DNA of 63,821 nucleotides, counting the filler, from Reticulomyxa filosa (Eukaryota; Protista; Foraminifera), in assembly GCA_000512085.1 (NCBI GenBank). It is 12 parts of 12 records of this genome, joined end to end, with 100 filler letters (N's around TTAATTAATTAA, not from the genome) between each part and the next. Parts side by side here need not be neighbours in the genome. Positions count along the whole stretch, not along the records: positions 12,953 to 16,563 come from ASPP01010533.1; 11 more parts are not named here. One strand, given 5' to 3'. A program made the translations under genes and the position numbers. This document shows, in pieces, positions 12,953-16,914 of the stretch. The stretch's first letter is position 1. Each line of letters begins with the position of its first letter. The notes under the pieces were generated by a model that was not told the DNA's origin, searched no databases, and worked only from the letters and a program-made list of their open reading frames with translations.

Positions 12953-13853
12953 AAAAAAAAACAACCAAACTTGTAAAATTGCCTAAATTGCGATTCGTTG
13001 GAAAGCGAGGTAATTTTTCCTTTGATTACGTTTTTGATATCTTGAATGGTGCTGCATCCTTGGGCTGAAAATCCATCGACAAACTCTTTGCGTTGAAACA
13101 AGCCCATCTCGGTGGAGTTCAAAAGCCAAGCGACTGCCAATGTTTCATGTCCTAGAGGAGGTGTTAAAAAAAAACAATACCAAGCCGTGTCAAAATATTC
13201 TCTTTTTTTTTTTCCTCCCCTCCCCTCCTTCCTTCACCCCCTTTATAATAGATTTTTTTAAAAGGGGGAAGTTCTGCCCCTTTTTTTTTTTTAAACCTAT
13301 AAAGTTTTTTTCTCAAAATTTTTAAGGAAGGAAGGGGGAGGAGGGGGGGAAAAGGCCTTTTTTTTTTTGAGTGTTTGAAAAGTTGTATTTCAATACCGTC
13401 AGGATTGACGCCAACATCTTTAAAGAATTGGATGGTCCCCTCCTCGGACATGATATCTTTATCCTCTTTGTCAGCGTATTTGTCAAACAATTTTCTCACT
13501 TTGTCTGGTGAGCCTGCTGATTTTTTTTCATTGTCATATTTGCTTGAGTTGTTAAAGTAATCATTCAAGGCCGCTTGGGCGTCCCATCTCTATTTATTAC
13601 AATGACCAACAAAATATTCTAACTAAAGTTGTCTTATATCAACAGTATATACATATATAAATATATATGTACTGTTGACTATGTGGCAATGTTGTTTCAT
13701 TAATTTTACGAGATCATCCACAAATGAGAGAAAAAAAAAAGACTTAACATTTGACTCAAGAATCTTCTGCGCAGTAGCGTCAGAAAGGTTGCCTGCAATA
13801 TCTTTAAATTCTTTGATTTTATTTTTTTTTTCGTTGCTGCTGAGAGAGGTCAC
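12953..13853 (-). CDS. DCN1: DCN1-like protein (defective in cullin neddylation), multi-exon, 3' partial
   Basis: UBA-like KIKEFKDIAGNLSDATAQKILES...WDAQAALNDYF, followed by LFDKYADKEDKDIMSEEGTIQFFKDVGVNP and LAVAWLLNSTEMGLFQRKEFVDGF...FRQFYKF. Confidence 0.9.
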
Positions 13854-14912
13854 TGCTCAAATACATTCGCATTATCAAAAGCCCCACCAAAAAAAAACAC
13901 TGTTTTAAATCAACTTCAACTATTCTCCAAACAGATAATATTTCCAAACATAAAGATGTTCACACTCAACTTAGATCAAATGGCGACACTGGTGCGACAA
14001 ATAAAGAAATCGGAGAAAGAGCGAAAGATTATATTGCAAAGAGCGCTCACAAATTATTATTTTTCGTTTGAATCCCGGACGCTGCTTTGGTGTACACTCT
14101 TCTTGTTTTACTGTCGCCACAACTCTTTTGACAAGCTTTTTTTGCTTTTACAAAATTGCTCGTCTCAAATACCTCGTGTTCTACTAATTATGGACTTGTT
14201 TTTTTAGAATTTTGTTAAATTGTGCATTACGATTCAATTTACAAACTTTAATTGTCTCACATTTTTTAAAGATACATACTCAAAGACAGCATACCACACT
14301 AACTACAATTAATATAGAGATAAATACTAAACGATATTTTTGAGCTTTGAAAACGCTTAAAAAAGTAATAAACTTTATTTAAAAGAATATTATTATTTAC
14401 TGATAATACAAATTGATATAATATTTTACTTTAGCAGAATGATCAAAGTATTTGAAACTATCAACTTTTGACTTTATGCAAAGCTAGTAGTTTTATGTTT
14501 ATTGACATTTTACAAGGATAATTTTAAGGTGTATCGTCGTGAGTTATTTGATAATGCTGATGAATTTGGAGACATTTGCCCACCATCTTTAGTGTTTATC
14601 TTTGTTTTTTTAATGTTTTGGTTTATTCGTTGCCAATGAGAAAAGTAAATTTTTTATGATCGCTTTAAGTTCACAAATGAGGTGTATTACAGATAAACGA
14701 TAATATGAGTACTAATGAATAAAAAATAAAAAATCACTCGAAAGCAATTACTTAACAGAAATTGGGACTACAACAGTTTTTCGGTAGGCTTAGTTTTTTT
14801 TCTTGTAACGCTCCTCAAGTGTTCACCAAGTAATAGTAACTACATAGTGTAATTGAGAGTATTCTGCCTGTCTTTCTTTGGAAAACATTGAAAGAAACAG
14901 GACAGAAAGGAA

Positions 14913-16415
14913 ATGACAGCGCTGACAAAGAAAGAGCAGGAATCAAGTTTAAACCGCATCTCTTTTACAAGTAATGGCGAAGAGTGGGCCTTTGAAAAAA
15001 TACCAGATAAGGTGCGTCGAATGCTTTTTTTTTTTTGAAAGAAAAGAGCAGAAGGGAATACAACACAACACTCATACACCAACATTTGACTTTTTATTTC
15101 ATTGTTGTGTCCTTCATTCCCTTAAAAAAAAAACGGTATATAGAAAGAAGTGGCCTTTTCGATAGGAAACAAAAACTATGGGAAAGTGACAAAAATCATA
15201 ATTAGCGAACGCAACCTGACGGTAACAGTGCACATAGGTAGACAGAAACTCGAAGGGCAAATACCACTACAAAAATGGTCAAGTATTTTGACAGCAATAA
15301 AAGGGCTGGACGAATACGTAACCGTGGAAATGGAAAAACAGCGTATGCTAATGGCAAAAATGTTAGCCGCTATGAATGGGCGAAGTAACTTTGACTTTTA
15401 CACACCAGTTTTCTAAAAAAAAAAATCAAACCATTCAAATTTTTTTTTTCTCTTTTTTTTTTATTTATTTAACAAATAAAAAGTATATGTATACGTAACC
15501 ATAAAAATTGGGAAGTTAATGGAACGCGAATGTCCGGAAACGTGCGAAAAGATAACACGTGATGTGTTGCTGCAAATGCTGAAGAGAGAAAACGAGCTGC
15601 GGTTAAGCAAAGAAGCGTTGGAAGAAATAGAGATGGAATCGCGTGAGTATGATGGCAATGACAATGAAAATGAAAGTAATAAGAATAAGAAGGAACATGA
15701 GAATGAGAAAGTACACATTCCAATGAGTATAATGAAATGGCAAGAGCGTGTAGTGAGAGAGTTTGGATATGAAAGTAACGATGAGGTGAACTATGCATTA
15801 CAGACATTGCGATCGGCTCGTCGATTGTATCCAAATGACATGGAGATCAAAGATGCAACGTATTATTTGAAATATAATCGCATTAATCGTGGCACATTGG
15901 GCGTGGGCGATGAATGGAAGGATGTGACACTAATGACATGCAATGCGCAAGCCAAGAAATTGAGTGATATAATTAGAGAACAAGATGTGAATAAACCGAC
16001 TGTACTCATAAGTGGAAGCATAACCTGACCACCCTTTCGTGTCAATGTCGGTTATTTGAATACAATGTTTGATGCGTTTTCACAGTCTTTCAATTTTGTA
16101 TTTGTATACATTTTGGAAGCTCATGCCTCGGATGAATGGCCCATCCGAACCAAACCGAATTTATGCATCAAACAACATGCATCGCTTAAAGATCGATGCT
16201 CTTTGGCTATTCGTTTAATTGACGAATTCCATTTTCAAATACCTGTTTTCGTTGACACGATGGATAATTGTTTTCAAACCACGTATGCTGCTTGGCCTTT
16301 ACGTGCGTTCCTTTTACATCACTCCACTATTCAATTCATTTTGCAACCCAAATGGCCTGGTTACTATGATCTTAAAGATCTATTAACCCAATTATCACAA
16401 TACTCTTCTTCTTAA
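14913..16415 (+). CDS. Iodothyronine deiodinase-like selenoprotein (TGA=Sec at 16026-16028) with a long N-terminal extension. Predicted exons 14913-15011, 15144-15384, ~15484-16415
   Basis: ORFs 15519-16028 and 16056-16415 are in the same frame and separated only by TGA. Readthrough gives KPTVLISGSIT-U-PPFR...FVFVYILEAHASDEWP...IKQHASLKDRCSLA...VFVDTMDNCFQTTYAAWPLRAFL, matching the deiodinase motifs GSCTUPPF, YIxEAHxSDGW and VDxMxN...YxAxPERL. The first intron (GT 15012/AG 15143) is phase-consistent. The third exon's acceptor is less certain. Confidence 0.92.
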
Positions 16416-16914
16416 AAGAAGAAGAAAAAGAGTTGGAGTTTATTTTTTCTTTTTTTTTTGGAATGTTGTTCTTGTTCATTCTCAAATAGTTGGATGCACA
16501 TCAAAATAAAATTGATGGAAAGTTAACTATAAAAAAATAAATTTCAGTTCATTTATTTTTTTTNNNNNNNNNNNNNNNNNNNNNNNNNNNNNNNNNNNNN
16601 NNNNNNNTTAATTAATTAANNNNNNNNNNNNNNNNNNNNNNNNNNNNNNNNNNNNNNNNNNNNAAACTTGCTTTCAACTTTAGTAGATTTTTGTGCTTGT
16701 CAAAATCGGAAATTAACGTTTCTAAAATCACAGATGTTTAGTTGACAATAAAAGGAAACGAATATCTTATACGTGAATAAGATTAAAGAACTATCATTCC
16801 GACAATTCCTTTTACAAAACAATTTTTCGAAAGATTCCCAATGTGAGAAATTGATGGCATATTTGTTGTTTGCTTAAAACGAATAAGCATTGACAATTAA
16901 AGGAAAGACACTTT

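Follow-up and report, generated by a model that had tools for sequence, protein, structure and literature searches.

Deiodinase-like selenoproteins are known from organisms other than animals. Those of marine (Sargasso Sea) bacteria were described in 2005, together with homologues that have a cysteine instead, and a redox role unrelated to the thyroid was suggested for them (PMC1088965). A deiodinase-like selenoprotein of Dictyostelium discoideum (didA, DDB_G0275741) followed in 2007, for which both a selenocysteine (Sec) insertion sequence (SECIS) and 75Se labelling were shown (PMC2375036). The DIF dechlorinase activity of a didA null mutant is normal, so that didA does not encode the DIF dechlorinase (PMC3205185). 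Here we describe a gene of this family in the foraminifer Reticulomyxa filosa. The window, i.e. the whole stretch of DNA that was analysed, consists of 63,821 nucleotides joined from twelve parts, and the gene lies on the part that spans positions 12,953–16,563 (ASPP01010533.1, 3,611 bp). Its reading frame contains a TGA codon at 16026–16028, which very probably encodes Sec, because it falls on the Sec column of the deiodinases, because it is kept almost universally in the relatives of the gene, and because purifying selection acts on either side of it.

As in Dictyostelium, the gene would encode a Sec-containing deiodinase homologue in a free-living protist that has no thyroid. The two organisms belong to different supergroups (Amoebozoa and Rhizaria/Foraminifera, respectively), and the UGA of didA is decoded via a SECIS in the 3' untranslated region (UTR). 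With the vertebrate enzymes DIO1–3 the foraminiferal gene shares the Pfam family, the G-S-x-T-U-P-P-F motif, the proton-relay residues in YIxEAHxSDxW and QH, and the Dio-specific insertion, but the identity is modest, and the cysteine at position −2 from Sec (FGSCTU) is an isoleucine in the window gene. The vertebrate proteins also have an N-terminal transmembrane helix, in contrast to the PH-like domain and helical region, about 290 residues in all, of the foraminiferal protein. The bacterial deiodinase-like selenoproteins belong to the same family and have Sec at the same position, but they are short, single-domain proteins with a bacterial SECIS right after the UGA, whereas the window gene has introns, N-terminal domains of eukaryotic type, and relatives with a eukaryotic K-turn SECIS in the 3' UTR.

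The first-pass annotation of the window had reported two open reading frames (ORFs) in the same frame, parted only by the TGA, had quoted several motifs downstream of it and had guessed that the host was a foraminiferan. All of these are confirmed. The ORF 15519–16028 closes with the TGA, in the context AGT GGA AGC ATA ACC TGA CCA CCC TTT (S-G-S-I-T-*-P-P-F), the same frame stays open to a TAA at 16413–16415, the motifs YILEAHASDEWP, QHASLKDR and VDTMDN..YAAWPLR are found 3' of the TGA, and the gene is deposited as a protein of R. filosa. The 128 amino acids that follow the TGA resemble a deiodinase far more than chance would allow: they match Pfam PF00837 (T4_deiodinase) with an E-value of 1.3e-20 and a score of 74.2 bits (the curated cut-off is 27 bits) over profile positions 115–236, so that the match begins immediately past the Sec column. 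HMMER searches also pair it with two crystallised catalytic domains, those of mouse Dio3 (4tr3, E 3e-12) and of Dio2 (9h48, E 6e-10), in both cases from the PPF that comes after the active-site residue, number 170 in Dio3. Residue 170 is naturally a Sec, which was replaced by Cys in the crystallised protein, and the TGA-derived residue of one relative (P0045, where it is called W) is aligned with it. In two other relatives, P0104 (read through) and P0179 (with Cys), the T4_deiodinase match is uninterrupted across the site (profile positions 72–234).

The residues expected of a deiodinase are found around the TGA. The following residues line up with equivalents in Dio3: Ser −3 and Thr −1 (counted from Sec), in VYILEAH the Tyr, Glu and His, in SDEW the Trp, in KQH the His, and in WPLR an Arg; the segment VYILEAHASDEWP...KQH of the window gene faces IYIEEAHPSDGW...PQH of Dio3. 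A proton relay and the substrate site have been proposed to involve these residues (PMC11592359). In an alignment of 28 relatives (A1), no variation is seen at E, A, H, D, W and P, and the catalytic residues as a whole are invariant or nearly so. The Dio-specific insertion is kept: 21 residues separate the Glu of EAH from the His of QH, compared to 20 in Dio3. The Cys of LCIKQH is kept across the clade and could be the resolving thiol. Although its fold resembles that of the peroxiredoxins, the domain belongs to the deiodinase family. A filing under peroxiredoxins (AhpC-TSA) was considered and rejected: the piece from the window matches T4_deiodinase only, and the AhpC-TSA/Redoxin matches of P0104 and P0179 are weak (E 5e-6 to 6e-4, versus 1e-28 to 3e-30 for T4_deiodinase).

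The conservation of the codon was followed in environmental sequences. The TGA is in frame at the Sec column in nine out of nine contigs from close relatives (56–75% identity), and the codons that flank it vary synonymously (e.g., agtggaagcataacc vs agcgcaagtattacc and agtggaagtgtgacc). Some of these contigs resemble complementary DNA (cDNA): they lack the introns of the window gene, and a poly(A) run lies about 250 nucleotides past the stop. One of them, L002, has a GC-rich tail after the 3' UTR poly(A) (positions 1608–1661) which is unlike the remaining contig and is probably adaptor or chimeric sequence of the metatranscriptome assembly. A wider metagenome scan used the peptide pattern YIxEAHA[SVM]D, which lies 30 residues downstream of the TGA and cannot bias that codon. 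It gave 540 relatives, the best 80 of which were examined, and TGA occupies the Sec column in 76 of the 78 loci that could be evaluated; the two others are misregistered alignments. Many of the loci with GSYT-TGA-PPF among these best 80 are on long, GC-rich contigs of bacterial type. The ratio of nonsynonymous to synonymous substitutions (dN/dS) downstream of the TGA is 0.15–0.30 when the window gene is compared with each relative, the synonymous divergence being near saturation. A profile of the part N-terminal to the codon recovers 686 clusters (at 50% identity), and nearly all of the predicted proteins end at the last profile position, just 5' of the Sec codon. The alternation between Sec and Cys which the first-pass annotation had proposed to look for is seen at this column, since the homologue P0179 has ..CYTCPPC.. 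where nearly all evaluable loci have TGA. A conserved TGA with coding constraint on either side is, in sequence comparisons, the classical signature of a Sec codon.

One may ask whether the TGA is read instead as cysteine or tryptophan, by a variant code or by near-cognate read-through, given that a Cys homologue exists and that P0045 and P0104 are written by some gene callers with a W at the site. This W is most simply explained by the automatic choice of genetic code 4 by the gene caller. The codon usage argues against a variant code: the coding sequences of the window gene and of seven close relatives (300–440 codons each) have exactly one in-frame TGA, always at the same column, and all eight use TGG throughout for Trp, and TGT or TGC for Cys. 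TGA also terminates 7 of 39 transcript-like relatives (contigs of up to 2.3 kb, with the stop on the contig), six of the seven being above 45% G+C, unlike the clade of the window gene (0.31–0.41). The 3' UTRs of the relatives hold SECIS-type K-turn hairpins, which are described below. Reading of the codon as Cys or Trp is therefore very improbable.

Some observations weigh against a Sec codon. An Rfam scan of the piece gives no SECIS, our own scan of the 148-nucleotide 3' flank (from the stop to 16563) gives no complete SECIS, and the source contig ends in a T-run at 16563, 148 nucleotides after the stop. In addition, the 99 nucleotides that surround the TGA (15987–16085, + strand) open with GT and close with AG, and their number is a multiple of three. 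The Sec-dependent enzyme put forward in the first-pass annotation is thus upheld as regards the place of the TGA, its conservation and the selection on both of its sides, but a complete SECIS was not found in the flank. The SECIS of the window gene is probably cut off by the end of the contig.

The 99-nucleotide segment is treated as an intron (intron A) in the public gene model. This model, ETO22704.1 (X6NAA9_RETFI, "deiodinase [Reticulomyxa filosa]", 270 amino acids), was recovered as profile hit P0048 and maps to 15519–15986, 16086–16359 and 16419–16486. With intron A, 33 codons are lost, among them the TGA and all of the G-S-x-T-U-P-P-F block of the active site. If the model were right, the gene would encode a deiodinase with neither Sec nor Cys in its active site. 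The segment is nevertheless exon-like: its GC content is 0.40 and its T/A runs do not exceed 4 nucleotides, while the real introns of the gene have a GC content of 0.33 and 0.18, and runs of 11–12. No other block of the family is as well conserved as the one that it encodes (..KPTVLISGSIT-U-PPFRVNVGYLN..), which is retained in the poly(A)-tailed, cDNA-like relatives. Without the segment, the protein loses beta1, the Sec residue and the first part of alpha1, so that ETO22704.1 keeps only Pfam profile positions 132–215. The same model also makes up a C-terminus from the 3' flank, by means of a second false intron (intron B, 16360–16418, + strand) that swaps the true C-terminus (GYYDLKDL..) for translated T-rich sequence; the corresponding block, PGYYD[LF]KDL, is conserved in the relatives. 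ETO22704.1 is wrong, because the gene finder bridged the TGA with a false intron, and it is without the active site, the true C-terminus and the first 121 residues. It is hardly credible that intron A is real. Bridging a Sec codon in this way is the usual error of gene finders on selenoprotein genes. Finally, that the TGA is a true stop, which would leave a pseudogene or a truncated protein of 291 residues and make the downstream frame a relic, agrees with the lack of a demonstrated SECIS in the window but is extremely improbable, considering that the 128 downstream codons are intact and under the constraint described above, that all the catalytic residues encoded there are retained, and that independent decay does not explain the same TGA in the relatives.

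The Sec codon also affects how the family appears in databases. The first-pass annotation had predicted that automated annotation would split the gene into two hypothetical genes; the public model is a single gene named "deiodinase", but the contigs of relatives are indeed split into two genes by the prokaryotic callers used on metagenomes. Hundreds of proteins of the family (P0029–P0189; L001–L009, L090–L096) end at the Sec codon, and the catalytic halves are called as separate proteins of 112–123 amino acids. Deiodinase-like selenoproteins are systematically truncated in metagenome protein catalogues. The present analysis corrects the public gene model ETO22704.1 and shows that protein databases hold a large environmental deiodinase-like family in a form cut at the Sec codon. 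One of the clusters nearest to the segment 15519–16025 in the feature space of the ESM Atlas consists of "hypothetical proteins" of 157 amino acids, mostly labelled Nucleocytoviricota; truncated calls of this family may thus exist in giant viruses too, which is to be taken as a lead only.

The search for SECIS elements relied mostly on a scan of our own, which looks for the UGAN/KGAW core and a helix II, and which was written since the Rfam SECIS models are insensitive here. The core is that published for eukaryotic SECIS elements (PMC3753652). Applied to 29 related loci, Rfam gives a single, weak match (SECIS_5 in L027, E 0.006). Our scan finds textbook elements (ATGA, a helix of 11–13 bp, apical AAA, and TGA[T/A]) in many of the more distant relatives of eukaryotic type. 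Under strict criteria, a SECIS-like hairpin is present in 13 of 41 transcript-like 3' regions, whereas 200 shuffles gave 0.1 on average and never more than 2. In the close clade, hairpins of the form RUGA-U-G[GA]AAA ... UUUYC-G-GA-U are found 58–255 nucleotides past the stop, and their upper-helix sequences are wholly different yet still pair. Two hairpins, in L007 (1138–1178) and L093 (1472–1506), combine a good UGAU/GGAU or UGAU/UGAU core with a helix II but lack the apical AA (or CC); SECIS hairpins of this kind would be unusual among eukaryotic elements. An ATGA near position 430 of the 3' UTR in L006–L009 was discarded as a SECIS candidate, as it is AGGA in L009.

In the window itself, the sequence UUGA-U-GGAAAG at 16512–16522 (+ strand), 97 nucleotides after the stop, may be the 5' half of a SECIS core, but no K-GA-W partner follows it up to 16563. 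A motif of this type occurs in 1.1% of the shuffles of the flank, which is weak since the motif was defined post hoc from the relatives. A compact hairpin at about 16496–16516 (CATCA..TGATG) was also considered, and rejected because it has no G.A/A.G tandem.

The corrected gene has three exons on the + strand (14913–16415) and encodes 420 amino acids, the putative Sec being residue 292. The start of the gene is at 14913 and not, as had been assumed, at the ATG at 15519, which is codon 2 of exon 3; two further 5' exons encode the PH-like domain. Exon 1 (14913–15011, 33 amino acids) provides the start codon and the first PH-like strands. It is a frame-0 ORF which begins with M-T-A-L, is directly preceded by in-frame stops and is followed by a GTGCGT donor, and 12 homologues open with M[ST]AL..SF..W.FK, as it does. 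Exon 2 (15144–15407, 88 amino acids) encodes the remaining PH-like domain and a conserved MLAAMNGR.NF.FY segment. Exon 3 (15516–16415) encodes the helical region (about 15516–15890) and the deiodinase-like domain of thioredoxin fold (about 15897–16412), and ends with the TAA.

Both introns have GT..AG ends and contain in-frame stops. Intron 1 (15012–15143) is 132 nucleotides long, with a GC content of 0.33 and a T/A run of 12 nucleotides, and is missing from the uninterrupted ORFs of L001 and L002. Intron 2 (15408–15515) is 108 nucleotides long, with a GC content of 0.18 and an 11-nucleotide run. In tblastn searches, the upstream ORFs of L001, L002, L004 and L006 align to the window from 15144 or 15150 on, and the relatives' upstream ORFs (206–312 amino acids) span the AT-rich, stop-containing segment of the window. 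Splicing of exon 2 to exon 3 gives ..FDFYTP|LMERECP.., equal in length to ..FDFYSPSIDRECP.. in L001, and both splice junctions bring back the spacing of the relatives. The exons and pieces were searched separately, the joined translation being used for the bookkeeping of frame and length only.

The domain order of the protein is PH-like domain, helical region, deiodinase-like domain. Pfam assigns no family to upstream pieces of 169, 69 and 44 amino acids of the window gene, nor to the N-terminal ORFs of the relatives, and a search for contigs that encode the 169-residue upstream ORF found no record. The N-terminal 273 residues of the orthologue L002 were therefore modelled with AlphaFold, from a 19-row alignment. 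The mean predicted local distance difference test (pLDDT) score is 67, with values of 68–82 over residues 11–90. Almost all the structures that match residues 10–91 of the model have the PH superfold, the best being the PH domain of Osh3 (Z 9.0, root-mean-square deviation of 2.3 Å over 78 residues), followed by SHARPIN, CERT, Akt, FERM-F3 and others (Z 6–8). Foldseek agrees on a PH-like fold, with a probability of about 0.98 and weak E-values. With moderate confidence, which rests on this model, the first ~100 residues can be described as a PH-like domain.

A low-confidence linker and a helical region (residues 129–220 of the L002 model) follow, the latter being the part that is widely conserved in the 686 clusters. 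The 290 N-terminal residues are hydrophilic, and a single-pass membrane anchor of the animal type is absent. Such an anchor defines the animal DIO1–3 and not the wider Pfam family. Three other proteins, P0061 (636 amino acids), P0115 and P0116, have other long N-terminal regions ahead of the same helical module and Sec domain, and that of P0116 contains Cys-rich, zinc-finger-like repeats. The helical module and the catalytic domain thus stay together, and what varies is the far N-terminus.

A mechanism can be proposed on this basis. The UGA would be decoded as Sec through a 3'-UTR SECIS which lies partly or wholly past the end of the contig. The selenolate would then attack an electrophile, which may be a peroxide, a disulfide or the halogen of an aromatic ring, and the enzyme would be reduced again via a thiol, possibly the conserved Cys of LCIKQH. 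Iodinated or brominated aromatics, which the first-pass annotation suggested, may be among the substrates; the didA null mutant, with its normal DIF dechlorinase activity, is to be set beside this. The role of the transmembrane anchor of the animal enzymes would fall to the PH-like domain, which would bring the enzyme to a membrane or to a partner. Thyroid hormones are not expected in a foraminifer; if the proposal is true, the architecture would suggest that a non-thyroid substrate undergoes dehalogenation or redox chemistry by an enzyme recruited to a membrane or partner.

The novelty implied by the first-pass annotation was overstated, considering that deiodinase-like selenoproteins were already known in a protist (2007, PMC2375036) and in bacteria (2005, PMC1088965). 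A search of the literature found no paper on the selenoproteins of Reticulomyxa or of foraminifera, which is not proof that there is none. The context of a PH-like domain and a helical module is possibly new. We regard as rather unlikely, on the whole, a broader proposal in which the gene would be the first documented foraminiferal selenoprotein and would represent a distinct, widespread clade of eukaryotic microbes (hundreds of clusters at 50% identity), systematically mis-annotated, with the Sec domain placed after a conserved helical module, a Reticulomyxa subclade in which a PH-like domain replaces the animal anchor, and SECIS elements that often do without the apical AA. The gene provides sequence-level evidence for the use of selenocysteine in a foraminifer (Rhizaria). 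It also adds a domain context to the question, raised in 2005–2007, of what the deiodinase homologues do outside animals, although it leaves that question about as testable as the Dictyostelium gene did.

The same piece of the window carries a second gene, on the − strand (12955–13853), which has introns, is DCN1-like (defective in cullin neddylation) and is cut by the left edge of the piece. Pfam searches with its single exons gave no family, and its identity came from a search of PDB sequences: the exon at 12955–13137 matches residues 46–103 of human DCN1-like protein 2 (E 7e-6), and the exon at 13380–13568 has a weak, colinear match to DCN1-like protein 1. The segment 13626–13853 has a weak UBA_4 match. 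An inverted repeat of polypyrimidine/polypurine sequence (13209–13235 and 13327–13353), with 27-nucleotide arms that are 78% complementary and 91 nucleotides apart, apparently lies within an intron of this gene; the miRNA-type matches given by Rfam in the piece come from this repeat and are spurious. Between DCN1-like exons there is also a near-perfect AT-rich palindrome (13639–13678), which has arms of 18 nucleotides, 89% complementary, and a loop of 4 nucleotides.

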